Positions 2,541 through 24,022 of a stretch of DNA of 30,582 nucleotides are shown here, in pieces. Location of the stretch: assembly GCA_025558095.1 (NCBI GenBank), contig JAIVFI010000048.1, positions 1 through 30,582 of the forward strand, given 5' to 3'. The translations under genes were made by a program, and so were the position numbers. Source of the DNA: Hyaloraphidium curvatum SAG 235-1. Lineage: Eukaryota > Fungi > Monoblepharomycota. Each line of letters opens with the position of its first letter. Positions within the stretch are counted from its first letter, which is position 1. The notes beneath the pieces were generated by a model, which made no database searches, was not told the DNA's origin, and worked only from the letters and a program-made list of their open reading frames with translations.

Positions 2541-3239
2541 CCACAGGAGCATGAAGCTGTTTGACGCCGAGATGCTAATTGCAGGCCTGTACAATCGCGA
2601 AAAGGCGGCTCTTGATTCCTTTGCTGCTCCATTCGAGCTGCCTCCAAGCGGGCGTGAGGGATGTAGACGTACAGGCTCTCTCGGACGAGTGCGTCCTTGG
2701 AACCGTCGGACCTCCAGCCGCCACCAGCCGCTCTCTCCCCTGCTCGAAAACTACGCTGGGTTTTCGACCTGGACGGGACGAGTGCCGACGCGGAAACCCT
2801 CCCCGCGCCGCCCACGTGCCCCGAGGACGTGCGCTCGACTTCGTTGAGGTCCCTCGCTCCGCTCCAAGGAACACCACCGCTTCGCGTGCGGTCATAGTCG
2901 CTGCCGTGGGCCTTCAAACAGGCCTTCAGTTCCCGGACGTTAGGCCCGTTGCCTGGGCTGGCGCTGCAGTTGGGTTTACCTCGTCGGAGTTCGGGACGCG
3001 GTCCTCAAGCGGCCTGCCGCGGCGTCGCACGCGACCCCAAACCCGTGGCAACGTTCCGTTGCTCCCTCGCCCCGAGCTTCAAGCGCACGGCGCCACCGAG
3101 CGGGTTCCGGCCACCACTTTGCCGCAAGCGGAGTTCGCGCCCGCGGACTTTGCCATCGGATCGGCTGTGCCGGGCGCAGTCCGACGCGGGGGGACGAAGT
3201 GCCGCCACCGCACACGCGTGGCTACGACGTTTCTCGAGC

Positions 3240-5631
3240 ATGACTGCGCATCGGAGCAATAATTCAGGGCCGCTAGCGGCGCCTCGCGTCATCGTGGTCG
3301 CGATCATCGCCGCCATCATCACGAGGGCGGTTCCTGCACGGGGCGCGACAATCATCGACGGCTTCACTCTTGGGAGCCGATGCGTTGTTGCAGGCACTTT
3401 CAAGCAGCTCTGTGAGCTGCCGCGCAGCATTGATTTCTTTCGTGCGTGCTCACACCGGCCACTACTCGGCCGGCATCGAAACCGCCATCAATCCAAGCCC
3501 AGCTACCCGGGACATGTCAGGCAAATTTAGCCTGTGAATCTACTTCCAGCGTTGGCTACGACGCTCGGCAGATTTGCGACGCAAGCGCCCCTCAGTCATT
3601 CACGCTCTCGGGCACGGTGGTTCTTCACTCGCCTTCTGCCGCGCCCACTCTCTCCATTGATTCTTGCATTTTCCGCGCAGGGCAATTACTTCGTCCTCAC
3701 CCAATGGTCCGGCACTTCCTGCTCCGGCACATATTCTACCGCCGCCGCGGTGCTCACCAATGAGTGCGTCCCGCTTGGTTTCCTCGGCATCCCGGCCTAT
3801 GGCCTCTCCACATGCTCCGGCGTCACCGACGCGGAAGGGAGCTTGTCCTTCTTTGTTGACGGGGCCTGTTCGGTACGTTTTCCCCTACCGCTCATGCGCG
3901 CTCTGCGTTACCCTATTCATGCGCACGGCATCCATGCAGAGGCCCTTCCCCAGCTTTGGCACGTTCAAAGCCATTCGCGGCCACTGCGACATTCTGAATC
4001 TCGGTTCTGCTACGTGTATGCCCTCCGGCTCCGTTCTTCGTGAAGTTCTGGTGACCAGTTTCGCCACAGTCGCTCTAACGGCCAAGTGCGATTACCCGCT
4101 TCAGGGTTTCCCGATTCCATTTGCAGAGCTACAGGGGGATCGGTTGCCACGACAAGTACCCAATCCGTCACCACCACGACGCCAACGCAATCAACGCCTC
4201 TCCCTTCTCCGCCGACCTCCTCATCGCCGCCCGTCGGAGCAATCGTAGGCGGTGTACTTGGGGGACTCGCGGCGCTTGCTCTGCTTGTAGTGCTGCTGTT
4301 CTGGATGAGGCGGAGGAGGAGGCCTGCGGAGAGCATTCCTGCGGAGAAAGCAGAGAAGCAGATGCCTGCAGGCTCGCCGCATATGGAACCTGGGACAGTT
4401 CGCGGGTTTTCATCCACCGCCAGGGGCAACGCTGACAGCGTGCCGCGAGTGGCGGCTTCACCTTCCGAAGCCAGCAACCCTGCGCTCGCGGAGGACGTCG
4501 CCTCAGTGCCGAGCAACGACCCACACCAGGAGCAAGCTTTACCCGTGACACCCGCTGCCGCCGTTGCTCTTGCGTTTCCTCTGGCAGCCTCTGGGGACGG
4601 AGCTTCTGCGGACACAGCAGGATCCACGCTCGCCGCTGGTCGGTCGCCTCCGGCACTCCCCTTTTTCCGGGCGGAAGCCCGATCGCCCCCCCCCCTGTCC
4701 CGCAGCCGAGCTCCAAGCTCCTTGTTTCGGCTACGGACATCGTCATCGACAGCTCGCAAAAGCTGGGAGAAGGCAGCTTTGGGGTTGTCTATGTCGGCAC
4801 TCTGCGCGGGACTAGAGTCGCAGTCAAGACTCTGAAAGGAGACCTCGACGAGCACACCCTGAAGGCTTTTGCGAAGGAGGTGACCAACTGGGAGGGCCTC
4901 GTCCAGCGTAACGGTGAGCGGCTCGCCAACGGCTCGGAGTCTGTGGAGGTGCTGATCTCCACGCTTTTACGCAGTCCTCCCGCTGATGGCCTACTGCCCT
5001 TCTCCCCCGATGATGGTCACCGACCTCGTCCGCGACGGCAACCTCCGCAAGTACCTGTCGGCCCGCGGCTGGCCCCTAGACCTCGGCCTGCGCTTCCTCG
5101 AAGACGTCGCCAACGGCATGGTCTACCTGCACGGCCTCGGCATCCTGCACGGCGACATCAAGTCCCTCAACGTGCTCATTGACGGCAGCAAACCATGATC
5201 ACCGACTTTGGCCTCTCGCGGGTGCGCCAGGAGGTCGGCAAGTCGACCGCCGCGGGCACCGTCGGCGGCGGGCTCTCGGGCACGCCGGGGTTCCTGGCGC
5301 CGGAGCTGGTGGACGGCGCGGCGCTGCAGAAGCCGGCGGACGTGTACGCGTTCTCGATGTTGTGCTACGAGGTCGTGAGCAAGGGCAAGTACCCGCTCGA
5401 GGAGCTGAACCCGGCATTGGTGGGTGCGAGCGCCGCCATCGCGACAAACGCTGACAACCACCTCCCATCCAGGTCCTGTACAACGTTGCCGTCAAGGGCG
5501 TCCGCCCGGAGCGGCCCGAGGGGGTTCCGGACGCAGTGTGGAGCCTTATGGAGCGGTGCTGGGACCAGGACCCGAAGAAGAGGCCGACGTTCGTGCAGGT
5601 GGCCAAGGAGCTGGACGAGATCGTCGGATAG
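3240..5631 (+). CDS. RLK-A, left-arm copy: signal peptide, 10-Cys ectodomain, Thr/Pro stalk, single TM, TKL-type kinase; 7 exons; apparent frameshifts at ~4128, ~4640, ~5192
   Basis: Signal RVIVVAIIAAIITRAVPARGA; TM VGAIVGGVLGGLAALALLVVLLFW followed by RRRRR; kinase motifs LGEGSFG, VAVK, HGDIKSLN, DFG, GTPGFLAPE, DVYAF, CWDQDPKKRPTF. Intron positions match RLK-B. Confidence 0.85.
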
Positions 5632-6065
5632 GGACGACGGTAGAAGCTCGCCCGATTTTTGTTAAGCAATCGTGTTTACAAGTCTGTCTGCGCTGTGATT
5701 CGAGGAGCGGGGAGCGGGGATCCTGTCGAGTCAGATCACCAGCCCGCGCGTCCCCACCCTCCTTCCCGACGCCGAGTCCTCAAGACCTGCGCAGCGGGCC
5801 TCCTGCGGCAACGCATCATCAGTGTTTCTTCCGCCGAAGGCGCGGGGACGGGCGCCCGCCGCGTCGCAATTCGCCCTCCAGGGAGCCAGCGGCCAAGTTC
5901 CGTCGCTGCCTCGACCGAACCCGCAGGAGCCGGCACTGTGCGGCGCGTGGGCGGAGAGCGGAATTCCGGTGGAGAGGGGATCTCGCGGCCGCGACGACGC
6001 CGTCGGCGTCTGAGTGTCAGTACTGCATTGCGACCGAGCACGGCCGATGGACCGGCGACGCGTCC

Positions 6066-6103
6066 TCGACCGCTCGGTCCCGTGAAACTTCCCGAGCGGT
6101 CGA
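6066..6103. other. Apex of the palindrome: stem tcgaccgctcgg / ccgagcggtcga around a 14-nt loop tcccgtgaaacttc (6078-6091)
   Basis: 6066-6077 is the reverse complement of 6092-6103, read directly. Confidence 0.9.
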
Positions 6104-6537
6104 GACGCGTCGCCGGTCCATCGGTGCTCGGTCGCAATGCAGTACTGACACTCAGACGACCCGACGGCGTCGTCGCGGCCGCGAGATCCCCTCTCCACCG
6201 GAATTCCGCTCTCCGCCCACGCGCCGCACAGTGCCGGCTCCTGCGGGTTCGGTCGAGGCAGCGACGGAACTTGGCCGCTGGCTCCCTGGACGGGGCGAAT
6301 TGCGACGCGGCGGGCGCCCGTCCCCGCGCCTTCGGCGGAAGAAACACTGATGATGCGTTGCCGCAGGAGGCCCGCTGCGCAGGTCTTGAGGACTCGGCGT
6401 CGGGAAGGAGGGTGGGGACGCGCGGGCTGGTGATCTGACTCGACAGGATCCCCGCTCCCCGCTCCTCGAATCACAGCGCAGACAGACTTGTAAACACGAT
6501 TGCTTAACAAAAATCGGGCGAGCTTCTACCGTCGTCC

Positions 6538-8933
6538 CTATCCGACGATCTCGTCCAGCTCCTTGGCCACCTGCACGAACGTCGGCCTCTTCTTCGGGTC
6601 CTGGTCCCAGCACCGCTCCATAAGGCTCCACACTGCGTCCGGAACCCCCTCGGGCCGCTCCGGCGGACGCCCTTGACGGCAACGTTGTACAGGACCTGGA
6701 TGGGAGGGTGGTTGTCAGCGTTTGTCGCGATGGCGGCGCTCGCACCCACCAATGCCGGGTTCAGCAGCTCCTCGAGCGGGTACTTGCCCTGCTCACGACC
6801 TCGTAGCACAACATCGAGAACGCGTACACGTCCGCCGGCTTCTGCAGCGCCGCGCCGTCCACCAGCTCCGGCGCCAGGAACCCCGGCGTGCCCGAGAGCC
6901 CGCCGCCGACGGTGCCCGCGGCGGTCGACTTGCCGACCTCCTGGCGCACCCGCGAGAGGCCAAAGTCGGTGATCATGGCTTTGCTGCCGTCAATGAGCAC
7001 GTTGAGGACTTGATGTCGCCGTGCAGGATGCCGAGGCCGTGCAGGTAGACCATGCCGTTGGCGACGTCTTCGAGGAAGCGCAGGCCGAGGTCTAGGGGCC
7101 AGCCGCGGGCCGACAGGTACTTGCGGAGGTTGCCGTCGCGGACGAGGTCGGTGACCATCATCGGGGGAGAAGGGCAGTAGGCCATCAGCGGGAGGACTGC
7201 GTAAAAGCGTGGAGATCAGCACCTCCACAGACTCCGAGCCGTTGGCGAGCCGCTCACCGTTACGCTGGACGAGGCCCTCCCAGTTGGTCACCTCCTTCGC
7301 AAAAGCCTTCAGGGTGTGCTCGTCGAGGTCTCCTTTCAGAGTCTTGACTGCGACTCTAGTCCCGCGCAGAGTGCCGACATAGACAACCCCAAAGCTGCCT
7401 TCTCCCAGCTTTTGCGAGCTGTCGATGACGATGTCCGTAGCCGAAACAAGGAGCTTGGAGCTCGGCTGCGGGACAGGGGGGGGGGCGATCGGGCTTCCGC
7501 CCGGAAAAAGGGGAGTGCCGGAGGCGACCGACCCAGCGGCGAGCGTGGATCCTGCTGTGTCCGCAGAAGCTCCGTCCCCAGAGGCTGCCAGAGGAAACGC
7601 AAGAGCAACGGCGGCAGCGGGTGTCACGGGTAAAGCTTGCTCCTGGTGTGGGTCGTTGCTCGGCACTGAGGCGACGTCCTCCGCGAGCGCAGGGTTGCTG
7701 GCTTCGGAAGGTGAAGCCGCCACTCGCGGCACGCTGTCAGCGTTGCCCCTGGCGGTGGATGAAAACCCGCGAACTGTCCCAGGTTCCATATGCGGCGAGC
7801 CTGCAGGCATCTGCTTCTCTGCTTTCTCCGCAGGAATGCTCTCCGCAGGCCTCCTCCTCCGCCTCATCCAGAACAGCAGCACTACAAGCAGAGCAAGCGC
7901 CGCGAGTCCCCCAAGTACACCGCCTACGATTGCTCCGACGGGCGGCGATGAGGAGGTCGGCGGAGAAGGGAGAGGCGTTGATTGCGTTGGCGTCGTGGTG
8001 GTGACGGATTGGGTACTTGTCGTGGCAACCGATCCCCCTGTAGCCTCTGCAAATGGAATCGGGAAACCCTGAAGCGGGTAATCGCACTTGGCCGTTAGAG
8101 CGACTGTGGCGAAACTGGTCACCAGAACTTCACGAAGAACGGAGCCGGAGGGCATACACGTAGCAGAACCGAGATTCAGAATGTCGCAGTGGCCGCGAAT
8201 GGCTTTGAACGTGCCAAAGCTGGGGAAGGGCCTCTGCATGGATGCCGTGCGCATGAATAGGGTAACGCAGAGCGCGCATGAGCGGTAGGGGAAAACGTAC
8301 CGAACAGGCCCCGTCAACAAAGAAGGACAAGCTCCCTTCCGCGTCGGTGACGCCGGAGCATGTGGAGAGGCCATAGGCCGGGATGCCGAGGAAACCAAGC
8401 GGGACGCACTCATTGGTGAGCACCGCGGCGGCGGTAGAATATGTGCCGGAGCAGGAAGTGCCGGACCATTGGGTGAGGACGAAGTAATTGCCCTGCGCGG
8501 AAAATGCAAGAATCAATGGAGAGAGTGGGCGCGGCAGAAGGCGAGTGAAGAACCACCGTGCCCGAGAGCGTGAATGACTGAGGGGCGCTTGCGTCGCAAA
8601 TCTGCCGAGCGTCGTAGCCAACGCTGGAAGTAGATTCACAGGCTAAATTTGCCTGACATGTCCCGGGTAGCTGGGCTTGGATTGATGGCGGTTTCGATGC
8701 CGGCCGAGTAGTGGCCGGTGTGAGCACGCACGAAAGAAATCAATGCTGCGCGGCAGCTCACAGAGCTGCTTGAAAGTGCCTGCAACAACGCATCGGCTCC
8801 CAAGAGTGAAGCCGTCGATGATTGTCGCGCCCCGTGCAGGAACCGCCCTCGTGATGATGGCGGCGATGATCGCGACCACGATGACGCGAGGCGCCGCTAG
8901 CGGCCCTGAATTATTGCTCCGATGCGCAGTCAT
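6538..8933 (-). CDS. RLK-A, right-arm copy; 7 exons; apparent frameshifts at ~7006, ~6790, ~6660
   Basis: Reverse complement of 3240..5631. ORF 6761..8509 shows stalk, TM and kinase N-lobe in one frame. Its indels are at different sites from those of the left copy, so the consensus of the two appears intact. Confidence 0.88.
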
Positions 8934-9635
8934 GCTCGAGATCAACGTCGTAGCCACGCGTGTGCGGTGGCGGCACTTCGTCCCCCCGCGTCGGACTGCG
9001 CCCCGGCACAGCCGATCCGATGGCAAAGTCCGCGGGCGCGAACTCCGCTTGCGGCAAAGTGGTGGCCGGAACCCGCTCGGTGGCGCCGTGCGCTTGAAGC
9101 TCGGGGCGAGGGAGCAACGGAACGTTGCCACGGGTTTGGGGTCGCGTGCGACGCCGCGGCAGGCCGCTTGAGGACCGCGTCCCGAACTCCGACGAGGTAA
9201 ACCCAACTGCAGCGCCAGCCCAGGCAACGGGCCTAACGTCCGGGAACTGAAGGCCTGTTTGAAGGCCCACGGCAGCGACTATGACCGCACGCGAAGCGGT
9301 GGTGTTCCTTGGAGCGGAGCGAGGGACCTCAACGAAGTCGAGCGCACGTCCTCGGGGCACGTGGGCGGCGCGGGGAGGGTTTCCGCGTCGGCACTCGTCC
9401 CGTCCAGGTCGAAAACCCAGCGTAGTTTTCGAGCAGGGGAGAGAGCGGCTGGTGGCGGCTGGAGGTCCGACGGTTCCAAGGACGCACTCGTCCGAGAGAG
9501 CCTGTACGTCTACATCCCTCACGCCCGCTTGGAGGCAGCTCGAATGGAGCAGCAAAGGAATCAAGAGCCGCCTTTTCGCGATTGTACAGGCCTGCAATTA
9601 GCATCTCGGCGTCAAACAGCTTCATGCTCCTGTGG

Positions 9636-10955
9636 TCATCTTCGATCAACGGCCTCTGCCCGCCCGCCAATCATCTCCACTTCCGCCTCCCCATCCAAGT
9701 CCCCCAGCGGCTCGTCCAAAACCCCCTCCTGCACCCCTTCCCCGCCCCCGTCCTCCTTGGGCGCCTCCCCGCACCCCTCCCAATCCACCGTCCACCTCGC
9801 CGCGATCCCCATCTCGGCCTTCCACCCCTCCCCCGTCCTCAGGCAGTCGTTGAGCCCCGCGTGCTCGCACCCCTTCGATCCCGAATAGACGCAGTCCGAG
9901 CGCGCGCGGAGCAAGGGGGCCGAGTACAGCGCGGCCCCGCCGAACGCGCCCCGCACGGGTACGAACGGTTCCTTCCCCTCGCCGTCCCCCTGCTCCTTCA
10001 CATTCTTCATCCCCTCGGGCCCGACATACTCGCAATACCACCCCCCTTTCTTCGCCCCCGCGCAGCTGCGGTGGTCCAGCGCTCCCCCGGGAAACGCGCC
10101 CCCGCCGTCGAGCGCGAACCGGTCGCAGTAGTATCCTTGCGCCCCCTCCGCGTGCGGCGCGGCGGGGACGGATGCGACGGTGCCGTTGGGGAGAGAACGG
10201 GGGAGGTACCACCCACAGATGCCGTTGGGGAAGAGGGCGGACCAGCCCTTGCCCCCGAAGGGCGGCCGGAGGTGCGAGGTGGAGGGGTCGAGGCGGTCGT
10301 ACCGCCGCTCCGCGGCCAGGAGGTTGGTCCACACACCCTCCCATCCCTCCACGCCCCGCTGCCGCTCCACGCGCCACGGCACGCACATGTCCGTGTCCAC
10401 CGGGAACAGGTAGTCGACGTTCGAGTACCAGGAGTGGGTCCGCAGCGCGTGGAGGTACCCGTCCCGCGCGCGGGCGAGCGTGCGGAGGTCCTTCTTCCCG
10501 CCCGGGTGGCGGAACGCGACGGCGCGGGCAGAGAGGATCTTCGGGTGTCGCGAGGGGCGGAGCGGCGGGGCCGGCGGGGCCGGCGGGTACGGAGGCGTCC
10601 AGTCTTTATGGTCGTCCTCGGATTCCAGGAACGGCACGCCGCGTTCGTCCGCCCAGGCGCGCAGCGCGCGGCCGCCGTCCCGCGAGCCGTTCTCGACGAG
10701 GAGGACGTGCAGCGCGCCAACCATCGACGCGAGGCGCTCCAAATTTGCGAGGAGGAAGGGGAGCTCGTGCGCCGCGGAGCGGGCGATGGTGGCGGCGAGG
10801 AGGACGAGGTCCGACGGGCAGCGCGCGCGGGACGCGTTGGAGGCTGTCCGTGGCGCGGGCTCCGGCTCGTCATCGAGGGCGGCCGGCGGCGACCGGAGCA
10901 GGAAAAACGACGAAATGAGCAGGACGAGCAGAACGAGTAGGTTCGGATGGGGCAT
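9636..10955 (-). CDS. Type II membrane GT-A fold glycosyltransferase, CAP59/CMT1 (GT69)-like, 439 aa, no intron needed
   Basis: N-terminal anchor LLVLLVLLISSFFLL; motifs VLLVENGSRD, LARARDGYL, DxD in YLFPVDTD, VRGAFGGAALY and CEH, resembling cryptococcal mannosyltransferase-like proteins. Confidence 0.68.
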   Translation of the reverse strand: MPHPNLLVLLVLLISSFFLLRSPPAALDDEPEPAPRTASNASRARCPSDLVLLAATIARSAAHELPFLLANLERLASMVGALHVLLVENGSRDGGRALRAWADERGVPFLESEDDHKDWTPPYPPAPPAPPLRPSRHPKILSARAVAFRHPGGKKDLRTLARARDGYLHALRTHSWYSNVDYLFPVDTDMCVPWRVERQRGVEGWEGVWTNLLAAERRYDRLDPSTSHLRPPFGGKGWSALFPNGICGWYLPRSLPNGTVASVPAAPHAEGAQGYYCDRFALDGGGAFPGGALDHRSCAGAKKGGWYCEYVGPEGMKNVKEQGDGEGKEPFVPVRGAFGGAALYSAPLLRARSDCVYSGSKGCEHAGLNDCLRTGEGWKAEMGIAARWTVDWEGCGEAPKEDGGGEGVQEGVLDEPLGDLDGEAEVEMIGGRAEAVDRR

Positions 10956-11373
10956 TCGAGGCCATGGGCGACACCGTTGACGGCTCTGACGGATCCGTCG
11001 ATCCCCCTCCCTCGATCTCCGAGCAATTCAAGAAACCAACGACGTGAGCCACGAAATGCACAGATATACATGTGATCTATCGAGTTCGGCCTACTGGAAG
11101 TGTGGATGCTCGCGATTCGGACAGGAATCGTCCCGACCGTCCGCCGCGCCCATTCGCCGCCTGGAAGCCAACTGAGCCTGATCCGCCAATGCATGACACC
11201 GCGGAGGACACGGAAGAGCCTCTCACCAGTAAATTGCGCCCGTCTTTGCCAGTTTCGGTCGCTTGCCTCCGTTTGGGGGCCTACCAACGGTCACATGACG
11301 TGGCCCATGCAGGGCATCTGGTTCCGCACGGCCGGCGGTCCCTTATCTGACGGCGTCATCCCGGCCCACCGGA

Positions 11374-12915
11374 ATGGCGCTCGTGTGCAGCTGCGCGACG
11401 ACGCAGCTCGTGCTCCGCGGCACGGGCTCGCTGTCGCTGGTCGGCGGGGCCGGGCGGCCGCCTGGGGAGCGCGCCGCGGAGATGCCGGTGGCGACAACCG
11501 CGCCCGCGGGAGTCCAGGGTCCCGGACGCCCCGGGTTGCCCGGAGAACTCGTATCGCGCATTTTGAGCAAAGTGGACCCGCTGGACTCGGCGACGCTGGC
11601 GGCCGCCGCGGCGGTGTGCCGCGCGTGGCGGCCGTGGGCGACCGAGCGGCTGTACGCGTACTGCCGGCCGCCGCTCTCAAAGCTCGACTCGCTGGCCGCA
11701 TTCTGGGAATCTCAGTACCCTTCGGGCGACGACGCGCCCTCGGCCAGCCTGCTGCTCGACGCCCCGCGGCTGCAGCACGCCGTGCGACTGGACGGGCTGT
11801 TCCCGCTGCCCCCCGCGCCCTCGTCGCTTCCCGACCACCCGCTGAAAACCCTCGACCTCTCGCTGCTCTCGCACGCTTCGGCAGCCGCCTTGCACCGCTT
11901 GGCCCTGCACTCCCCGCCGGCCTCGGCCCTGGTCACCGCGAAAGACTACCGCCACATGGCCGGCGGCTCCCTGGCCGCCCTGCTCACCCGCTCGCCGCGT
12001 CTGCTCCGCCTCGTCCTACCGGAAAGCTACGGCGAGGACCGCCTCTCCATCGACGACTTTTTCCTCTCCCTGCTCCCCACCACCGTCCCCCTCCTCGCCC
12101 ATCTGGCCGTGTACGACAACGGCCACGTGACGGACCGCGGCCTCCCGCCCTTCTCGCAGCTCCCCCTGCGCTCGCTCCACCTCGCAGTCGTGCCGTGGCG
12201 CGTGATTCTCGCAAAATTGCTGTCGCACCTGCCGCCCACCCTGGAATCGCTGGGCATGGGCAAGCTCAAGGCGCGCGACGCGGACCAGCTCGTCTGGTTC
12301 CTCCGCGACCACCCTTCCATGAACGAACTGGACCTCCCCCACGCCGAGCCCGGGTTCTTCGCGGGCGGCACCGTCGCCCGCCTCCTCGACGCCGCCCCGG
12401 CGCTGGAGAGGCTGGGGATCGAGGTCGAGCCCGGGCAGACCATCCCGCCCCCGCCGCCTGCGGAACCGGAACCACAACCTGCGGAAGGCGAGCAGCCCGA
12501 TGCCGATCCCGGCGGCGCCGAACAGCTGCAGCCGCCCCCCGTCGCCGCACCGGCGCCGCAGGAGCCGGAACCGCACTACCTCTCGGGCCTGCTGTCCCCT
12601 CCCCCGTCCTTGACCCACCTCCGCGTGGCGGGGCACGCGCTGCCTCCCGATCTGCTCCCCCGCGTGCTGCCGCAGCTCGTCGCGCTGGACGCCAGGGGGT
12701 GCGGGGCGGAGGTGGCCGCGGCGTTCGCGGCGGGGGCAAGGTACCCGAAGCTGAGGATGGTGGACGTGCGAGGATGCGAGGGCGTGGAGAGGGAGGTGGT
12801 GGTGGCCGCGTGCCCGGCGCTGGAGAGGGTGTTCGTTGGGGAGATCAGGCAGGGGGACGGGCTGCGGGAGTGGGGCGCTTTCGGGAGCGAGGGGGGGAGG
12901 TGGAACCTCTCTTGA
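11374..12915 (+). CDS. F-box protein with degenerate RNI-like leucine-rich repeats and a Pro/Glu-rich insert (513 aa; alternative start at 11482)
   Basis: F-box-like LPGELVSRILSKV..LAAAAAVCRAW; LxxLxL repeats (LKTLDLS, LRSLHL, LESLGM, LERLGI, LTHLRV, LRMVDVRGC). Confidence 0.8.
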   Translation: MALVCSCATTQLVLRGTGSLSLVGGAGRPPGERAAEMPVATTAPAGVQGPGRPGLPGELVSRILSKVDPLDSATLAAAAAVCRAWRPWATERLYAYCRPPLSKLDSLAAFWESQYPSGDDAPSASLLLDAPRLQHAVRLDGLFPLPPAPSSLPDHPLKTLDLSLLSHASAAALHRLALHSPPASALVTAKDYRHMAGGSLAALLTRSPRLLRLVLPESYGEDRLSIDDFFLSLLPTTVPLLAHLAVYDNGHVTDRGLPPFSQLPLRSLHLAVVPWRVILAKLLSHLPPTLESLGMGKLKARDADQLVWFLRDHPSMNELDLPHAEPGFFAGGTVARLLDAAPALERLGIEVEPGQTIPPPPPAEPEPQPAEGEQPDADPGGAEQLQPPPVAAPAPQEPEPHYLSGLLSPPPSLTHLRVAGHALPPDLLPRVLPQLVALDARGCGAEVAAAFAAGARYPKLRMVDVRGCEGVEREVVVAACPALERVFVGEIRQGDGLREWGAFGSEGGRWNLS

Positions 12916-13609
12916 TCGGATCCTCGGGGAGGCGGATGGGGACGGTGCCGATGGGAACGGGAAGGAAGGGAACAGTGTCTTGCCGGATGGGAAGGGCGCT
13001 TGCTAGATGTACAGGTAGACGGCGGCGAAGAAAGGCCGATAGACAGATGCAGTAGTGGAACCTATGGGTTGGGAACGACCCGCTCTCCATCTTCTTCCTA
13101 ACTGGAGCAAGAGCAGCCGTGCCCCGTTGTCCTTGCGACTCGTGGCGCGTGCTCTCCAGTTTTCTTCGCGTGCGGACGTCGGCAGTCGGCATGCACCTGC
13201 TTCGATTGCTTCGAGTATCGAGTATCAGCCTCACCAGCCCACCTCTACTTCGACCCACGTCTCCACGTCTCGCTACCGGATACCTGTTCACCGACCGGGC
13301 CGCCCGCTTTCGTCGACCAATCTTCTGCTTACGGGGCAGGCAGTGTTGGCTGCCACCGCAACGCACGGCGCACCCGCAGCGAGGAAACCGGCACTGCGCG
13401 CGGGTTCTTTCATTGCCTCGCTCCGCGCTCGAAGGAGCAGCACCCGCGGTGCCGTCCGCACCGTGCGGCGCTTAGACGGAGAGTGAAGCCCTCGGGCGCT
13501 CCCACATCGGGCCGGGTGGTGCCGCATCCCGGCGGGCGCGAGGTCCACCGCGCCCTCGCTTCGTTGTCGGTCTTTTCGCGGCCCCCCTCGACTGCGCCGC
13601 ACAGCCAGG

Positions 13610-16047
13610 ATGCCTCCGCGACGACTTCGCTTACAGCCGCGACGAATGACGCGCGTCTGCGCTGTCGGGATCGTCGCCGCGTTGATCGCCACGCGCGCGG
13701 TTCCGATCTGGGGCGCGACCATCGTCGACGGCTTCATCCCCGGCTCGGGCTGCAGGGTCAACGCCACCGCGCCGCAGCTCTGTGCGTCGACGCCCGGCCC
13801 CCACCCGCTCCTCACTGATCATGTCCCCCCTTTCCCTCTCCTGCCGAGCAGTCCAGGCGAACCTGCCGACCACCTGCCAGGGCAACGTCGCCTGCATTCC
13901 CAGTAACGCCACAGTCAACTACGACGTGACCCAGACCTGCAACGCCAACGCCCCCCCGTCCTTCACCCTCCAGGGCTCGGTCGGTTTCCGCGCCCCATTT
14001 CCGCGCCCGGCACACTCTGACGCCCCCCTCCCCCTCCCATCCGCAGGGAGACTACTTTGTCGTCACCCAGTGGTCCGGCGCCACCTGCACCGGCACCTAC
14101 CTCACCGCCGCCGCCGTGATCGCCAACCAGTGCGTGCCCCTCGGCTTCATCGGGATCCCCGCCTTCGGCCGCCCTGCCTGCGCCCCTGGCGCCGCTTCGG
14201 GCACCATGGCCTTCTTCGGTAACGACGCCTGCACCGTGGGTTTGGCCTCGTGGCCCAGCGCCCGCCCTCCCATGACGCGTTTGTCCTGCCGCCCCAGATC
14301 CCCTTCACTGGCCTCGGCACCTTCAGCGTCACCGCCGGCAACTGCGGCACCCTCTCGCTCGGCCCCTCCACCTGTAAGTCCCCCACTTCCCCGCCCTTTA
14401 CCCCGCGCTGACAACTTCCCACCCACAGTCGCCCTGACCGCCAAGTGCGCCTCGATCGTCAATGGCTCCCCGGTCATTCCTTTTGCTGCTATTGCGGCGG
14501 TTACAACTACGACAACAACCACGACAACGCAAACGTTCACCACCGCGACACCAACAGAGGCGACACCGGTTCCTCCAACGCCAGCATCCTCATCTCCACC
14601 TGTTGGGGCGATCGTCGGTGGCGTGATCGGAGGAATCGCGGCGGTCGCGGCCATCGCCGGGCTGTTGTTCTGGCTGCGGCGAAGAGGTAGGCCTGCGGAA
14701 AGTGTTCCTGCGGATCCAGCAGAGAAGCAGCAGCCTAGAGGCTCGCCGAACCTGGAAACCGCTGCGACAGCTCAGCACTACAAGGGAGCGGGCCCACCAC
14801 CAGCGCCAAATGGCTTCGTTGCTTCTGCTCCAGTTCCCGCAACCATTGCCGTTGACAGTGTCCCGCGAGTGGTGGCTTCAGCTCCCGAACCTAGCAAAAC
14901 CGCACTCCTCGTGGACCTCGCCTTGGTGCCAAACAATGACGCGGAACAAGCTTTGCCCGTGCAGCACGCTGCGGCCGTTGCTCTTGCTTCTCCTCCGTTG
15001 GGTATAGGGGGTGGAGCTGAGGACACGGGATCGACCTTCGCCGCGGCCTCACTTGCCTCCGGTGCTCCCCTTCCCCCCGGCGGCGGAACCCCGATCGCCC
15101 CCCTCCCTGTCCCGCAGCCGAGCTCCAAGCTCCTTGTTTCGGCTACGGACATCGTCATCGACAGCTCGCAAAAGCTGGGAGAGGGCAGCTTTGGGGTTGT
15201 CTATGTCGGCACTCTGCGCGGGACTAGAGTCGCAGTCAAGACTCTGAAAGGAGACCTCGACGAGCACACTCTGAAGGCTTTTGCGAAGGAGGTGACCAAC
15301 TGGGAGGGCCTCGTCCAGCGTAACGGTGAGCGGCTCGCCAACGGCTCGGAGTCTGTGGAGGTGCTGATCTCCACGCTTTTACGCAGTCCTCCCGCTGATG
15401 GCCTACTGCCCTTCTCCCCCGATGATGGTCACCGACCTCGTCCGCGACGGCAACCTCCGCAAGTACCTGTCGGCCCGCGGCTGGCCCCTAGACCTCGGCC
15501 TGCGCTTCCTCGAAGACGTCGCCAACGGCATGGTCTACCTGCACGGCCTCGGCATCCTGCACGGCGACATCAAGTCCCTCAACGTGCTCATTGACGGCAG
15601 CAAAGCCATGATCACCGACTTTGGCCTCTCGCGGGTGCGCCAGGAGGTCGGCAAGTCGACCGCCGCGGGTACCGTCGGCGGCGGGCTCTCTGGCACGCCG
15701 GGGTTCCTGGCGCCGGAGCTGGTGGACGGCGCGGCGCTGCAGAAGCCGGCGGACGTGTACGCGTTCGCGATGCTGTGCTACGAGGTCGTGAGCAAGGGCA
15801 AGTACCCGCTCGAGGAGCTGCTGAACCCGGCATTGGTGGGTGCGAGCGCCGCCATCGCGAGCTTCGCTGACAATCACCTCCCACCCAGGTCCTGTACAAC
15901 GTCGCCGTCAAGGGCGTCCGCCCGGAGCGGCCCGAGGGGGTCCCGGACGCGGTGTGGAGCCTGATGGAGCGGTGCTGGGACCAGGACCCGAAGAAGAGGC
16001 CGACGTTCGTGCAGGTGGCCAAGGAGCTGGACGAAATCGTCAGATAG
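13610..16047 (+). CDS. RLK-B: intact receptor-like TKL kinase; exons 13610-13781, 13852-13979, 14047-14235, 14298-14373, 14429-15325, 15387-15835, 15889-16047
   Basis: Six GT..AG introns of 53-70 nt splice into a continuous frame: signal peptide, 10-Cys ectodomain, poly-Thr stalk, TM VGAIVGGVIGGIAAVAAIAGLLFWL-RRR, and a complete kinase with an HGD catalytic loop. Confidence 0.92.
13715..14480. repeat. Ectodomain tract near-identical, in inverted orientation, to RLP-C (~23200-23958)
   Basis: Intron 1, exon 2 and the first half of intron 2 are essentially identical. Exons 3-4 are near-identical and intron 3 is more diverged. Confidence 0.9.
15091..16040. repeat. Kinase-module tract near-identical to RLK-A (~4679-5625 and ~6545-7495)
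   Basis: Intron 5 (gtgagcggctcgcc...ttttacgcag) is identical in A and B, with only scattered substitutions elsewhere. The flanking juxtamembrane region and 3' UTR are clearly more diverged. Confidence 0.9.
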
Positions 16048-16203
16048 GCCCTACGGTAGATGTCCCCACTACTTTTGCAATTCAATCGTGTTTGCAGATC
16101 TGGCGGCGCTGTGATTCGAGGAGCGGGCTGGCCACGGCGCGACTTCCTCTCCCCCGCGAATCTCCCGCAGATTGTCTCCCGAGCAGACAGCCTCCCAACG
16201 ACG

Positions 16204-17740
16204 ATGGCCGCCTCGGGCGCCGACGACGTTATCCTTCAGAAGGACGCGGACTTCCTGCCCGAAGAGTGGCTGGCCCTATTCCCCGCCCCGTCTCCCCCGG
16301 TCCCGACGTTCGGCGACGAGGAGCAGGGCGCGAACCCCGAGGACGCCGCCCGCGCAGCTGACCCTCTGACGGCGGACGGAATATTGCGCGACCTGGGCGG
16401 CGCGGCAAAGGTGGCGGCGTGGCCCGTCCTGCGCGTCCACGCGGCGCTGCCGGGCTGGTTCACGGCACTCGCGATTTCCCCTTCCAGTGCCGCCACCATC
16501 GCCCTCCTCGGGCTCACCGTGCCCTTGGCAGGGGACATGTTTACCGCCAAGGACGTGGCGCTCGGAATTGCGGGGACGACGCTGTTTCTCACAGGGCTCT
16601 CTGTCAGTTACGGCCTCGTCAGCCCGTTCCTCGGCGCCAACATTTTTCGGAACGGCTTGGTGGAGTTCTCGCACGTGGCAGCTCTTTGCCGATGGCTGCG
16701 GCTCGTTGGCCGAGGGAAAACGCCTCAGGGCGTCGAGGCCGCCTCCTCGCCCCTCGTGCGCCACGTCCCCGGCGACCTCTCTTGCCCGTGTACGTCGTGC
16801 TGCAGTTGGGTCGAAAGCACATCTGGAATCCTCGACTTCCTCGATCTTTTCGGCAACGTTTCCCTTGGTTGGATGGTCTTGTTCTTTTTCGCCTACACAC
16901 CGGTTGTAACCTTCGGTGCGGCCCTGTGGTCGACTTGGTACGGCGCTCTCCTTGGGGCCATATGGGCATCCATGTTTCCGGCTTACATCTTCACTGCGTT
17001 GTCACGCCTCCTGGGGAACGACAATATGGCTCACACGGCCCTCCAACGGCGGCTGCACTGCCGAGCTGTCGATATGGCCATGGCTGACCTCCTGAGCCGG
17101 TTTCGCAGCGCCGCTGCTGCCGGCGATGCGCCTCCCCGCGCGGATTCGTGGCTCTACGTCAGGCTGCACTATCGCTTCGCGGCGCTCTGCCGGTTCAGAC
17201 GCCAGCAGGACGGGATCGTGATCTCGCGGCTGTACGGGCTCGCTCTCGTGCCGGGTGCGGTCCTGCTTACCGCGCTGTATGCGGTGAGTGTCGCAGCGTC
17301 ACGGTGCCGCCGGACACGCAACCTGACGGCTCCCCGGGCACCTTCCGCAGGCCGTCGGCCGCTGTATCTCCGCCTGGCAGCTTGCCGTGTTCGCCCACGC
17401 CGCGGTGTACTTTACCGTCAACGCCGTCAACCTCGCCTCCCGCAACTCGCTCATCGACGCCGTCGCGGCCGTCTACCGCGACGCGCAGAGGGAGCTCCGT
17501 GCGCTCGCGCTCCGCACCGGGCCGGGACCCCTTGCGGACGAGATCGCGCTCCACGACCGCGCGATAGCGTCGTTTCAGGACGTCGCCAGGTACAGGGCGA
17601 AGCTGTTCGGGTTCGTGGTGTCGTTCGGGACGGTGAGGACGATGCTGGTGACGGGGCTGACGGTCGCCGTCGCGCTGTGGAGCGTGCTGCGGGCTTTCGG
17701 GGTGACGGCGACCCTTGAGAGCTTCTGTCCCGTATCATAG
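16204..17740 (+). CDS. Multi-pass membrane protein, gustatory-receptor-like / DUF3537-like 7TM ion-channel candidate (489 aa; intron 17284-17350)
   Basis: Several hydrophobic segments. Spliced C-terminus YRAKLFGFVVSFGTVRTMLVTGLTVAVALWSVLR resembles the split TM7 of the GR/GRL/DUF3537 superfamily. Paralog at 24763-26114. The gene model is more certain than the family call. Confidence 0.7.
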
Positions 17741-17953
17741 AGGCCAGCGGATGCAGGAAGATCGGTTACTCCCGGAAGTGCTCGGGTTCCGAAGGTGGCG
17801 ACGTCGTTCCAGTTGTGGCGGCCAAGGAAGTAAGGAACTGGATGGGCTCATGGGATATTTGGACTAGAAAGCTGGAGTATCTAGTAATTTCCAGGCTTTC
17901 TTCCGCCTCTTCCCACTTCTCTCGAAATCGCCGCTGGGCGGCCTCGGCACCGC

Positions 17954-18347
17954 TCAACTGTCCTCCGCGCACAGGCCCGAGACGCAGACGTCCGAGCCGC
18001 AGCAGTCCCCATCCCGGCTGCAGCCCTCGCCCGTGTCGGCACATGCCGGGGCGTACCGCTTGTACAGCGCCCGCCGGTCCCTTGCGGGCGCGACGCAGGC
18101 AACCATGCCCGCGGGGGCGCCGGGGTGCGCGTACTCGCAGAACTGGTGGGCGGCGCAATCAGCGCACGAACGGCGGAAGACGGCCGCGGTGGTGGATGGG
18201 GGACTGCGCGGAACAGGGGAGTCGTGAGCATCGGGCGGCGAAGGGAAGTCGGCGAACCCACGCCGCGGCGGCCGAGGCGACTGAGGCAACGATTAGGAGG
18301 GCGACGATTAGGAGGGCGACGATTTTGACGGCGGTCGTGAACTTCAT
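17954..18347 (-). CDS. Small secreted Cys-rich precursor with a C-terminal knottin (ICK-like) module; intron 18204-18261
   Basis: Signal MKFTTAVKIVALLIVALLIVASVASAAAA. The gtgggt..gctcac..gcag intron joins in frame to PPSTTAAVFRR-SCADC...LYKR-YAPACADTGEGCSRDGDCCGSDVCVSGLCAEDS*. Confidence 0.82.
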
Positions 18348-19309
18348 CGTTGCTCACTCCTGTGTTCGTCGGTGCTTGGGGGGACGTCCCCTTTGACCCT
18401 TTATGGGGGATGATTTGATGGGGGATGAGGATCCCGAGTCGGGGGATGCGGGCGGCATCCGGCTGTCCTCCCCGCCGTCATCGACCAGCGATGGGTTGGG
18501 CGGATCGACCGGAGACCCAGCGATTCGACTTATGAGCTTGCCTCGACGACTAGGTGTCATTTTTGTACGACGGAAAACGCTGTCAAGCGATCCAAGGGGA
18601 CCGAGGTATAGGCATCCCTTGCGGCGTGCGCTCCCTTTGCCACGAACACCGATCCAGCCGATAGTTCATCACGGATCTCGTGCTCGGATACTAAAGTCAG
18701 GCGGACATTTTTTTGCATCCGTCGACGCTCCTGTTTCGGCGCTACGGCTGCCTCCGCTGCAGGTCGGCACTACATCGCCCTTCTGTGGTCCTCCACGCAC
18801 TCGCCCGACTCGCACAGGCCGGATCCGCGGCACTGGGAGCATATCGATTGAAGGACTGTCTTAAGGAACTAACGGCACATCGAGTCGCGCTGTTGCGGCC
18901 GTAAAATGCGAGTTCGAAACGGACCGAAGGACAGTGAAAGGTTGCTGCGATGCGCTCCCATAGCACCGCCCCGATTCGGGATCTCGTGCTCGCAGTAGCT
19001 CCCTTCGAAGCTCGAACATCTTTCATATCCATCGCGCGCCAGCATCTCCTCGGCCGAGGGGCAACAGCTGCTGTTTCGACGAACTCCTTCCCAGCGCGAC
19101 GGCCAGCAGAAAAAGATGGCAAGAAACCCCAGGAAATGCAAAAGAAGAGACCAAGCCGCAGTTCATCTCGTTGGAAACTTTTGCCCAGAACGCGATTCGT
19201 CCCGTCGTTCCAATCTTCGGTGGCCGGGCGGCTTCACTCCGGCTCGGACCCGCTCGACCTCCCGACATTGAGCCCACCAGCACCCCCTCGGCAGCCCCGT
19301 CTCCCCACG

Positions 19310-20328
19310 ATGCTCCGCGCCACCTCTCTCTTCCGCGCCGTGCGCCAGGCCGCGCCCCGCCGCACCATGTCGGGCGCTCCGGTGCGCTTCCGCCCGCGAC
19401 GCGTCGGAACCAGGAACTGACGCGAATTGCTCCCCCTGGACACCTCGGCCCCGATGTTGCCCCTCATGATACCGATGTGCTTCCGCCGATGTGGTTGCGA
19501 CGCGTCGCGCGGGACCATAGCTCTACACGGCCGAGGCCACCGCCGTCGGAGTGGGCTGCCCTTGCCCCTGGAATCGGAAGCCCGCGTCGCTCACAAACCC
19601 CCTCCCCCCCTGCATCGCGCGTCCGATTCTCTCTCATAGGCCAGGTACGCTTTTGTTCCGACTGCCACCGTGGCCGCCCGGGCGCTGAACCTCCCCGCAG
19701 GAACGGCCACGTGAAGTCGAGCGACGGGATCCTGGACTTCGACCTGTCGGTGCCCAAGGGCATGGGCGGGCCGGGGGGTGCCAAGACTAACCCAGAGCAG
19801 CTGTTTGCCGCTGGGTAAGTCCCCCGTGGGGCCGTGGTGTGTCCAATTCTGACCTTCTGAGCCGTCGACGTGCTCCCCGCGGCCAAACAGCTACTCTGCC
19901 TGCTTCGGAGGCGCGCTTGGTGCCGCGCAGGGCATGCTGAAGCTGCCGAAGTGGGTCTCCTGCCTCCTTTTCGTGGTTTTGGGCACCGATGGACCGGCCG
20001 ACCCTCACAGGCTGCCCGACAACATGAGCGTCAACGCAAAGGTCTCGATCGGCAAGGGCGAGGGCGGCTTCGACCTCGCCGTGGACTTTGTCGTCACCGC
20101 TGTGGGCACTTCCGTCTCCAGCTCGCGGTGCGGCTGGATCGACTGATCACTACCATTGCAGCCCGGCTACGACAAGGCGGACCTGCAGAAGATCATCGAC
20201 AAGGCGCACACCGGTGGGCCCTCCATCTTTACCTCACGTTGCTTCGGATCTGAACCGCGCTCTCGGCAGTCTGCCCGTACTCCCGGGCGACCAAGGGCAA
20301 CATGCCCGTGACGACCGTCATCGGCTGA
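19310..20328 (+). CDS. ohr: Organic hydroperoxide resistance protein (Ohr, OsmC/Ohr family); exons 19310-19381, 19521-19550, 19640-19644, 19701-19814, 19891-19950, 20011-20101, 20162-20213, 20270-20328
   Basis: Spliced product contains LYTAEATAVGARNGHV, TNPEQLFAAGYSACF and AHTVCPYSRATKGN, i.e. both catalytic Cys motifs. N-terminus resembles a mitochondrial presequence. Confidence 0.93.
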
Positions 20329-20728
20329 GCATCCTGCTTTCCTCCACTTCTTTCTTGGCATCTATCGCCCGAATGTTCCGTGGTTGAATGCGCAGCCTTT
20401 TCCGCGCGCGGCTGGCATCGCAGGTCCGGGCGGTGTTTGCCTTTGGCGTGGGTGGCGTCCGGCCGGGCTGTGCGCCAATGCGACGGGCCCTGACGTCCGT
20501 CCGTCCAGCTTTCGGCCTCATACGGCACCGAAGAAGGAAGCAAAGTTGTCGGCTTCAACCTCCGTCCATTCGAGAAAGGAAACCTGGCTTCCATCGCGCG
20601 GGAGTTGCGGCGGCGGAACTGTTGTGGGTCCAGCGACTCAGCGGGATGCCGCAGCTCCGCCCCTTCGGGATCTGGCCGGCCAACACCGCCCGCGGCCCCC
20701 CCAGTTCACCCCAGCTCACACCGGACAC

Positions 20729-22365
20729 ATGCTCCTCGCCGCGCTCCTCGCCGTGCTGCTCCTGGCGAGCGGCGCGCGCGCGACGCCCACGCCCTCCGCC
20801 TGCGGGCCGGGCGTCTGCGGGGACGGCATCCTCTGCTGCGACGACTGGTTCCTCGGTGCGCCCTCCTCCTTCCCTTCCTCTCGCGATTCGGGCTGACTCG
20901 CTGGACTTCTGCACGCAGGCGCCAAGTGCTACCTCGCCGAGGTGATGGTCTGCACGCCCGACCTCGGGCGGGCCGCGGGCGACCTGTCGCTGTGCCCCGT
21001 CGGCACCTGGGCATGCGACAGAGCGTGCTATGACCCGTCGAAGTACCGATGCGAGGGTGGGAAACTGGAGCTGGGGCCGGCTACGGCTACGGGAACTGGG
21101 ACGGGGACGACAGAGACGGCGGCGCCCGAGACGACGAGCAGGGTGGTGCCGACCACCTCGCCGCGCCGCAAGACGACGAGCAAGGGGCCCAAGGCGACGA
21201 CGACAAAGGCCCGCAAGACGGCCACGACGCGCAAGACGACCACCAAGCGCCCGACGACCAAGCGCCGGACGACCAAATCCCTCACCGCGGCCCGCAAGTC
21301 AACCTCCCGCCCGGTCCCCAAGGCCACGTCCAAGATTCCAGCCCCCCCGCCGACGACCACCAAATCCGGTCCCGCCCCCACGCAGACCGCCGACCTCCGC
21401 ATCAAGAACTCGTGCACCTCCACCCTGTGGTTCGAAGCCCGCTGGATGGGCAAACCCCTACCCGGCCACGCGAGCACCATCACGCGCGCCCTCCCGGGCG
21501 AGTACGTTGACTACGTCATCCCCGCCGACGGCCTCGATTCGACGCGGTTCTGGGGCAAGTTCGGGTGCGACGACCGGGGGAGGAACTGCCTCGTCGGGGA
21601 CAGTATGGGGTTCTACCCGGGGAACGAGTGCCCGCCCGGGGGGTGCAACCCGCCGATCGACAGCCTCTTCGAGGCGACGTGGGGTTGCAAGCCGGGGACG
21701 GGGTGCCATGCCGCAAAGCCCACTACGTGGTTTGATACGACCCAGGTCCGTTTCCGCTGCTGTTGCGTGCGCGATAGCTGACTCTTTGCGCCCTCCAGGT
21801 CGACGGCTGGACGATCCCGTACCGCCTCCGCGCCTTCGGCGAGACCGACCGCTGCGACTGCAAGGCCGGCGTCTGCGGCTTCTCCGGCGTCGATGCCACC
21901 CGCCTGACGCTGGACAAATGCCCCACCGCCGACGACCTCTCGTGGTCGGGCCGATGGGCGACAACGACCAACGGCTCCAACCTCTCGGCCGTGAACCTGC
22001 TCGCCGCCCGGAACGGCGTCGCGGTGGGCTGCATCTCGCCGTGCAAGATCTTGACCTTCGCCCCGCCATGGGGCTTTGGCGAGAAGGAATCCGCGGGCGG
22101 CGCGGCCACGTACATGTGCTGTCCCACCCCCGATCCCAACCCCGCCACGTGCCGCCCCGAGACGGGCTGCCTCCTCTCGCCCGAGTGCAACGCGGGGCCG
22201 GTCAAGGACACGCAGTACGTGCGGACGGTCAACACGCTGGCGCCGGGGATCTACGCCTTCAGCTACGACGACGAGGTCGGGCTGCACGCGTGCCCGGCAG
22301 GGACGGTGGTGTACGAGTTTGAGTTCTGCCCTGAGGGATCGGGGGAGTACCCGATGCGGGTGTGA
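20729..22365 (+). CDS. Secreted thaumatin-like (PR-5 family) protein with an N-terminal Cys-rich CBM52-like module and a Thr/Lys-rich linker; introns 20856-20918 and 21746-21798
   Basis: Signal MLLAALLAVLLLASGARA; CPVGTWACDRACYDPSKYRCEGGKL; thaumatin hallmarks IKNSCTSTLW, RFWGKFGC, SLFEAT, WFDTTQVDGWTIP, GCISPC, YAFSYDD, YEFEFCP. Confidence 0.85.
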
Positions 22366-23079
22366 GGGCGTCGACGGCACCGCGGTGTTGCCCTTGGCGA
22401 GCACTCTCCTCACGTTGGCGGGCACGGCCGGCCGGGGGGCGGCACGGAGCAGCGGGCCCAAAGGCGACGCGCGGAAGAAGGCGGCGGCCTCTGCGAAGCC
22501 GCCGTCGAGCGACGCGGCCGCCAGGGACTCAGCAAGATCCGCCATGGCCGATTAAATTACGTCAGAGGCTCGGCGGCCGCGCTGCCGGTTCACGGTACGG
22601 TAGACGCGACGTTGTTGACTTGATGTCGAACCTGCCTAGGTCATCCACCCCGGCGCGGTGCTCCTCATCTAGCTCCATCCCGCCGATCAACCACGCGGAT
22701 CCAGCTCGCAAAGTTCTTCGGAAAGCCGAGGAGAGGTTGCTTGTCGGGGGCGGACACCGCGCATCCGGATGTACTATGTAATCTTTGCTCCTCAACCGCG
22801 CTGAGCTTCTGGGCCTCAGCAGGCTCGCGGGAGGTTTCTTCCCCGGTCCCAACCCCGCGGGCACTCCTTTGATGCCGCCAAAGTGGACGGAAGGGGCATC
22901 CGGGACGGATCGATGATCTCGCGGAGCGAGTGAGGGACGCCGGGCCCTGCAGGGCCAGACGCGCGCAAGCCGCCCGGTCCAAAGTCCCGATTATATCGTA
23001 CCCAAAGTAGCGTGGTCCTCATACAAAGTTGCTCCTCCTGCAATACCCGTCTACCCATCCATCCTTTTGTAGCCGGCGC

Positions 23080-24022
23080 CTAGTACATGGCGGCGGCGGC
23101 GGCAGCGGCGGCGGCACCGAGCACGGGCATCAGCGTGGCGCGGACCATGCTGCCAGCGCCGGGGCGGCTGGTGGTCGCGGTGGCGGTGACAGCGGCGAAG
23201 GGGATGGTGGGGGAGCCGTTGACGACGGCGGCGCACTTGGCGGTCAGGGCGACTGCGGGGGGGAGTTGTCAGCGCGGGGTAAAGGGCGGGGAAGGGCGAG
23301 ACTTACAGACGGAGGGGCCGAGCGAAAGGGTGCCGCAGTTGCCGGCGGTGACGTTGAAGGTGCCGACGCCGGTGAAGGGGATCTGCATCGACAGGAAAAC
23401 GCGTCACTTGAGGCGGCCAGCAGGCGACGGGGAGAAACCCACGGTGCAGGCGTCGTTACCGAAGAAGGCCATGGTGCCCGAAGCGGCGCCAGGGGCGCAG
23501 GCAGGGCGGCCGAAGGCGGGGATGCCGATGAAGCCGAGGGGCACGCACTGGTTGGCGATCACGGCGGCGGCGGTGAGGTAGGTGCCGGTGCAGGTGGCGC
23601 CGGACCACTGGGTGACGACAAAGTACTCGCCCTGCGGATGGGAGCGGGGCGTCAGCGCTGGGCCGGGCGCGGAAATGGGGCGCGGAAACCGACCGAGCCC
23701 TGGAGGGTGAAGGACGGGGGGGCGTTGGCGTTGCAGGTCTGGGTCACGTCGTAGTTGACTGTGGCGTTACTGGGAATGCAGGCGACGTTGCCCTGGCAGG
23801 TGGTCGGCAGGTTCGCCTGGACTGCTCGGCAGGAGAGGGAAAGGGGGGACATGATCAGTGAGGAGCGGGTGGGGGCCCGGGCGTCAACGCACAGAGCTGC
23901 GGCGCGGTGGCGTTGACTTTGCAGCCCGAGCCGGGGATGAAGCCGTCGATGATGGTCGCGGCGCGCGCGGGGGCGGCGGCCAGCGCGAGGGCGGCGAGGA
24001 TGACGGCGGCGGCGGCGCGCAT
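23080..24022 (-). CDS. RLP-C: ectodomain-only paralog of RLK-B with a signal peptide and a GPI-anchor-like C-terminus; 5 exons, no kinase
   Basis: Starts MRAAAAVILAALALAAAPARAATIIDGF and has four introns at the same positions as RLK-B introns 1-4. Ends ...TATATTSRPGAGSMVRATLMPVLGAAAAAAAAMY*, i.e. small-residue omega region, hydrophobic tail and no cytoplasmic part. Confidence 0.87.

Follow-up and report, generated by a model that had tools for sequence, protein, structure and literature searches.

The window analysed here is the whole of contig C48 (30,582 bp) from Hyaloraphidium curvatum, the species that NCBI names on its protein matches and an early-diverging, monoblepharid (zoosporic) fungus. 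It holds two receptor-like kinase (RLK) genes, RLK-A and RLK-B, and a kinase-less receptor-like protein (RLP) gene, RLP-C, which share a 10-Cys ectodomain with each other and with a fourth member, D, that lies just past the window. We consider it likely that these genes belong to a lineage-specific surface-gene cluster of inverted and partial duplicates homogenised by repeated gene conversion, and that they encode putative kinase-coupled surface sensors.

The evidence that carries this reading is the uneven divergence between A and B. Identity between the two genes is 36–50% in introns 1–4, 61–70% in the ectodomain exons and 58–69% across the stalk, transmembrane (TM) and juxtamembrane regions; it then reaches 98% in the kinase part of exon 5, 61 of 61 positions in intron 5, 99% in exon 6, 89% in intron 6 and 96% in exon 7, and is 64% in the 3' flank. 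The resulting conversion tract (15085–16034 on the + strand in B; approximately 6551–7500 of the window on the − strand in A) covers the whole kinase domain together with introns 5 and 6, with a divergence of 1.9% versus 35.9% outside. Its identical core of 399 bp at 15271–15669 is the longest run, the maximum over 10,000 permutations being 60, and the clustering of identity was significant for A–B, B–C and B–D (permutation tests, P ≤ 1e-4). Synonymous divergence (dS) between A and B was 1.15 in the ectodomain versus 0.050 in the kinase, where the nonsynonymous divergence (dN) was 0.005, and the A–B distance on protein trees was 0.006 for the kinase versus 0.83 for ectodomain exon 3. The separate ectodomain and kinase trees called for in the preliminary description of this DNA are therefore discordant in depth of divergence, but their topologies are compatible. 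One edge of the tract falls within exon 5 and the other close to the stop codon, away from exon borders and introns. We found, then, clustered identity that extends to silent sites and introns in otherwise old paralogs, as gene conversion would leave it, and the conversion among A, B and C that had been proposed earlier is upheld by the permutation tests and by the contrast in dS.

Gene models and predicted protein architecture

The exons of A and B were searched, aligned and counted individually, and signal peptides, TM helices and topology were called by inspection or simple rules. RLK-B (13610–16047, + strand) comprises seven exons (13610–13781, 13852–13979, 14047–14235, 14298–14373, 14429–15325, 15387–15834 and 15889–16047), with an alternative start codon at 13646, and its kinase holds a sixth intron that was absent from the preliminary description. 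Its parts are a predicted signal peptide, the 10-Cys head, a Thr/Pro-rich stalk, a TM helix (14602–14676, + strand) followed by a run of Arg that fits the positive-inside rule and a type I topology, a juxtamembrane region of ~150 residues, and the kinase. The plan of a receptor-like kinase (signal peptide, ectodomain, one TM helix with inner basic residues, kinase) is thus found in one B transcript, as judged from the gene model and from a contig of the public run X1, which is labelled 'RNA?', with the signal peptide and helix called by inspection.

RLK-A (6538–8933, − strand) has the same order of parts: a predicted signal peptide, the 10-Cys ectodomain in five exons, a Ser/Thr/Pro stalk, a TM helix, a juxtamembrane region and a TKL kinase. 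The copy in the window at these positions, which is the one used in the preliminary description, contains indel frameshifts, and none are present in the intact copy on a second contig, C30, at ~C30:50987–53384. We found no full-length annotated A or B protein in the protein collection. One candidate for such a protein, P0017, was rejected as a different protein with two kinases; this 682-aa protein with two kinase domains is encoded at ~78 kb on C30, a few kb past the region that the window covers.

RLP-C (23080–24022, − strand) corresponds to the NCBI hypothetical protein P0002 (231 aa), with a predicted signal peptide, the 10-Cys ectodomain, a short linker and a GPI-like (glycosylphosphatidylinositol) C-terminal signal; the protein contains four N-glycosylation sequons, and the splice pattern of the NCBI model matches that of A and B. 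The fourth member, D (P0001; C30:49161–50498), lies directly downstream of A on C30, just past the point at which the window folds back on itself. It has a head like those of A–C, then a stalk of 142 residues (49% Ser/Thr) and a GPI-like tail. The public D model begins at an internal Met and omits exon 1 and the signal peptide; we located exon 1 at L002:325–498 (− strand). By simple rules, the last 17 residues of the C and D tails are hydrophobic and uncharged (mean hydropathy 1.7 and 2.0) and small candidate attachment residues stand 20–25 residues from the end, so that both proteins are predicted to carry GPI-like anchors. Two more kinases, E (on contig C25) and F (on C24), have diverged heads with 31–36% identity, and the head of E is almost intronless.

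Each of A, B, C and D has its 10 Cys distributed as 1 + 3 + 4 + 1 + 1 over five ectodomain exons, and the positions and phases of the four ectodomain introns are identical in A and B. The conserved core of the ectodomain is exon 3 with its 4 Cys (14047–14235, + strand, in B; 23443–23631, − strand, in C), which is 95–100% identical in B, C and D. Exon alignments accordingly bear out the earlier statement that the ectodomain common to A, B and C has 10 Cys and is interrupted by four identically placed introns, and that A and B add stalk, TM helix and kinase to it. The proposed architecture of type I membrane kinases beside kinase-less paralogs with the same ectodomain also stands, the GPI-type assignment of the latter being a prediction by rules.

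Origin of the mosaic and alternative explanations

A second set of tracts involves the heads of B, C and D. The B–C conversion tract (13729–13979, + strand; C counterpart ~23694–23945, − strand) runs from the last part of exon 1 through intron 1 and exon 2, and over it B and C are 97–100% identical, with D only 59–93% identical to either. The closest pair is C–D in introns 2 and 3, and B–C again from exon 4 to exon 5; relationships among B, C and D are reticulate. The mosaic nature of RLK-B is therefore real, with a kinase and intron 5 near-identical to A and a segment including intron 1 near-identical to C. The broader claim that its ectodomain as a whole is near-identical to that of C holds for 13729–13979, but exon 3 is near-identical in all three genes and in introns 2 and 3 C is closest to D. 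Similarly, the signal peptide of B does resemble that of A, as had been noted, but it is equally D-like, and since it is also found in D we read it as a family trait and not as a piece taken from A. That the set might swap sensor modules onto a conserved kinase, with RLP-C as co-receptor or decoy, as had been proposed, is a conjecture; the ectodomain dN/dS of 0.3–0.5 gave no signal of positive or diversifying selection on the head. An internal duplication of the ectodomain, with exons 2 and 3 as modules, was rejected (hhalign probability 0.2%).

The surroundings of B give a further indication of how the cluster may have arisen. Just downstream of B lies a putative multi-pass membrane gene (16204–17740, + strand; putatively of seven-transmembrane, 7TM, type), which has an 80%-identical paralog downstream of D (C30:46606–48121). 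B with its 7TM gene is thus paralogous, at 80–85%, to D with the second 7TM copy on C30, and the two copies mark an old inverted segmental duplication. Juxtamembrane motifs are common to A and B and absent from F, and no kinase relics were detected near or downstream of C or D by tblastn (E ≤ 10). On the reading that we favour, A and B would be old sister genes in head-to-head orientation, and C and D would derive from a B-type head by partial duplication. Segments would also have been duplicated in inverted orientation, and repeated non-reciprocal recombination between inverted copies would have followed. One set of tracts would keep the kinase domains of A and B almost identical through repeated gene conversion and another would homogenise segments of the heads of B, C and D, while most introns, along with the stalk, the TM helix and the juxtamembrane region, would have drifted apart. 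In A and B, an N-glycosylatable 10-Cys head sits on a Ser/Thr/Pro-rich stalk, and a single TM helix leads to a non-RD TKL kinase, predicted to be cytoplasmic, that has all catalytic motifs; C and D keep only the head, with a GPI-like signal after a short linker (C) or the 142-residue stalk (D). A and B are probably sensors of the cell surface or cell wall, with the kinase as their direct signalling output. The kinase-less forms probably share their ligand or wall component and would serve as partners, as decoys or for display linked to the wall.

An improbable alternative is that B arose as one recent fusion of a C/D-type 5' half with the 3' half of A, by exon shuffling or unequal recombination. 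Such a fusion would account for the grouping of the B head with C and D and of the B kinase with A, and the paralogy of B and its 7TM gene with the kinase-less D and its 7TM copy would allow a kinase-less ancestor of B. However, B resembles A in its stalk, TM and juxtamembrane regions but is 31–42% diverged from it there, where a recent fusion would leave near-identity as in the kinase, and the tracts are nested, with identities of 100%, 96–99% and 89%. Neither edge of the kinase tract, one within exon 5 and one close to the stop codon, coincides with an intron, and B–C identity is itself patchy. Because of the diverged stalk, TM and juxtamembrane regions and of the tract edges inside exons, joining a C head to an A kinase in one step is unlikely, and the preliminary description of B as built from two neighbours was an over-reading: B has its own diverged middle section, nested tracts of different ages, and a downstream gene that it shares by descent with D. 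As judged from these comparisons, B looks like an old paralog that was repeatedly converted, rather than a receptor assembled from two neighbours.

That assembly or polishing joined A and C into a chimeric RLK-B, the circumstance that had been named as fatal to the mosaic, is highly improbable, although the assembly at this locus is imperfect, with a redundant contig, a fold-back and indel errors, and the paralogs contain stretches of 190–400 identical bases able to mislead assemblers. In the assembly searched (31.9 Mb, 55 contigs), C30:50530–75036 matches window positions 6086–30582 at 99.95% (1 mismatch, 12 gap positions). Window positions 6086–12184 recur as the reverse complement at 1–6085, which makes 1–12184 a 12-kb palindrome whose arms are told apart by 1 mismatch and by 22 short indels (1–3 bases each, 30 gap positions in all), many of them at base runs. 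C30 has no palindrome and at that point runs on into gene D. C48 is thus redundant and begins with a fold-back, as is typical of a contig built on a chimeric long read, and positions 1–6085, which carry an error-laden second RLK-A at ~3240–5711 (+ strand), are an assembly artefact outside the true locus. As C48 duplicates C30 and folds back, RLK-A occurs twice in the window and the true neighbourhood continues on C30; the duplication of C30:50530–75036 is also the reason why C48 genes are annotated twice at NCBI, where P0002 has two accessions.

Against a chimera, B has ~650 bp of unique stalk, TM and juxtamembrane sequence as well as unique flanks, and C30 and C48 agree at 99.95%; nor can polishing raise 60% identity to 100% across hundreds of bases. 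Contigs from public runs bear on the same point. Those of X1 remove B introns 1–5 exactly as modelled, all with GT..AG ends, and skip the stretches 13782–13851, 13979/80–14045/46, 14236–14297, 14374–14428 and 15325/26–15385/86. X1 record 1 splices the unique 5' end of B to exon 2, and X1 record 2 runs through B exon 4, the B-unique stalk/TM exon and exon 6 with no differences; it connects the unique stalk with the kinase and is B-type at each of the four sites where B and A can be told apart (15089, 15104, 15183 and 15270). Record 6 of X2, a DNA run, spans 14965–15483 and crosses the 5' edge of the kinase tract. Record 12 of X4, a freshwater metatranscriptome (2025), joins exon 2 to a B-type exon 3, and a second X4 contig is of C type. 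Because RNA and DNA contigs support its splice sites and junctions, we do not take B for an assembly chimera. Over window positions 13761–14471, X4 contains spliced B-type contigs without differences in addition to C-type ones, which suggests that the species or a near-identical strain was active in a natural freshwater sample.

That strong purifying selection alone made the A and B kinases near-identical is hardly credible, since the conservation of kinase domains and the low kinase dN of 0.005 are met by a dS of 0.05 in the kinase versus 1.15 in the ectodomain, by 61 of 61 identical positions in intron 5 and 89% identity in intron 6 versus 36–50% in introns 1–4, and by only 76–77% amino-acid identity to the next closest paralogs.

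Several points weigh against the reading of a converted cluster of surface sensors. Contigs built from k-mers can hop between identical stretches of paralogs, and X1 record 1 turns C-type in exon 3; X1–X3 are probably from the same strain as the assembly. The closest pair among B, C and D varies by segment, and conversion may have run in either direction. We infer function, localisation, GPI anchoring and kinase activity from the predicted proteins, and the calls of GPI anchors, signal peptides and topology rest on simple rules. Lastly, an AlphaFold2 model of the C ectodomain, from a 6-row alignment, had a mean predicted local distance difference test (pLDDT) score of 32.6, too low to yield a fold, which leaves ligand binding as a guess.

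Kinase and ectodomain families

Exon 6 of B scored 86.2 bits against Pfam PK_Tyr_Ser-Thr (PF07714; cut-off 23.1) and 74.6 against Pkinase, and the N-lobe piece of the B kinase scored 24 bits against PK_Tyr_Ser-Thr. The translations contain a GEGSFG Gly loop, the VAVK Lys, the alpha-C Glu, HGDIKSLN (non-RD), DFG and LAPE, and the catalytic loop has the Ser/Thr (TKL) form and lacks the AAR/RAA signature of Tyr kinases. With the paralog P0008 as query, the best solved kinase relatives were EGFR, CTR1, EphA2, Lyn, Mer, ABL1 and RIPK4, and no kinase of IRAK, BAK1 or BRI1 type or other plant RLK was among the best 60 solved relatives listed. On these matches and motifs we class the kinase as TKL-like and not as plant RLK/Pelle.

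After A and B themselves, the closest paralogs have only 76–77% kinase amino-acid identity, and they belong to a wider family. The TM helix motif of B (Pro-[Ile/Val]-Gly-Ala-Ile-Val-Gly-Gly-Val...) recurs 0.5–1.6 kb upstream of a related kinase at at least 13 genome loci. Some of these have other ectodomains, one being a head of STIG1-type Cys-rich plus lectin-like make-up; the loci include C6:48–53 kb, C6:1–4.5 kb and C24:155–161 kb. The NCBI models of two paralogous kinases, P0005 and P0008, are kinase-only (319 and 346 aa), and the public annotation misses the receptor architecture. A relative was also observed in an unrelated sequencing run, SRR23967301 (Logan; L012:6001–8481), as an intronless protein of 826 aa that combines a lectin-like head and the same TM motif with an SH3 domain and a 60–70% identical kinase, and this predicted protein points to relatives of the receptor unit outside the H. 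curvatum genome.

The ectodomain matched no Pfam family, including WSC (PF01822) and Mid2, in searches with P0001 (E ≤ 10), P0002 (E ≤ 0.1) and the exon pieces. A homolog search over 1.84 billion representative proteins gave four matches only: D, C, a metagenome fragment of 80 aa (P0004) and a Bacteroidota protein of the type IX secretion system (T9SS) with 3048 aa. The Ig-like repeats of this last protein (L005:10001–19147) match ~60 residues in the C-terminal third of the ectodomain (summed E 7.5e-16), and we treated it as a compositional or chance similarity and not as a homolog, the Cys not being conserved. An ESM Atlas feature search with the ectodomain gave a best score of 0.76, below the useful level. 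The statement that its family could not be recognised thus still applies, and on the searches made we classify the ectodomain as an orphan, previously undescribed family.

Comparison with other receptor systems

In plants, RLK/RLP pairs share an ectodomain, as do LysM RLKs and GPI-anchored LysM proteins. The H. curvatum genes resemble them in having a single-pass kinase and a kinase-less paralog, of predicted GPI type, with the same ectodomain, a non-RD loop, and clustered paralogs that exchange sequence; they differ in a kinase that is TKL-like and not RLK/Pelle, an ectodomain outside any Pfam family, and a fungal host. The resemblance is convergent, and the term 'plant-style', used for this set in the preliminary description, is apt as an analogy only, given that the kinase is TKL-like and that its best 60 solved relatives listed include neither IRAK nor a plant RLK. 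The yeast wall-integrity sensors Wsc1-3 and Mid2 have a Cys-rich head, a Ser/Thr-rich stalk and one TM helix, and recruit a guanine nucleotide exchange factor by a short cytoplasmic tail. The Cys-rich head, the long Ser/Thr-rich stalk (probably O-glycosylated), the single TM helix and the type I topology are found in the H. curvatum proteins too; unlike the yeast sensors, these have no WSC match, a full cytoplasmic kinase and paralogs of predicted GPI type. Concerted evolution by gene conversion is familiar from tandem and inverted receptor gene clusters, and the sharp-edged tracts of near-identity, introns included, between diverged inverted paralogs a few kb apart conform to it. What departs from the usual case is that separate tracts homogenise a signalling module (A–B) and a sensing module (B–C–D), by an ordinary mechanism.

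Transmembrane TKL kinases of protists (oomycetes and amoebozoans) have been surveyed (PMC10463195, PMC3019232), and the H. curvatum proteins are like them in placing a TKL kinase behind one TM helix, with lineage-specific and often unannotated ectodomains, the difference being that the host here is a fungus. Transmembrane kinases in fungi are few, with 54 in 18 fungi, mostly IRE1 (PMC10463195), and fungi are stated to lack receptor kinases (PMC5854419, PMC6733946). The two kinase surveys (PMC10463195, PMC3019232) left the H. curvatum lineage unsampled, and no paper in the literature searched treats Hyaloraphidium together with kinase and receptor.

We tentatively raise the possibility, which we hold to be less likely than not, that Hyaloraphidium, and perhaps other zoosporic fungi, may have a genuine receptor-kinase system. 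It would comprise at least 13 type I TKL receptors that place varied ectodomains on a single conserved unit of TM helix and kinase, and an orphan 10-Cys domain present both on kinases and on GPI-anchored partners, with conversion coupling or uncoupling the sensing and signalling modules, convergent with the immunity-type RLK/RLP clusters of plants. If true, such a system would run counter to the frequent assertion that receptor kinases are absent from fungi. Here receptor-like kinases with kinase-less partners, evolving in concert and bearing an orphan sensor domain, stand in a kingdom from which such an architecture is said to be missing. If these proteins are surface receptors, direct kinase-coupled sensing would be present, or would have been re-invented, in zoosporic fungi, and the compact size of the system would make it suitable for studying how modules for sensing and for signalling stay together or are exchanged.

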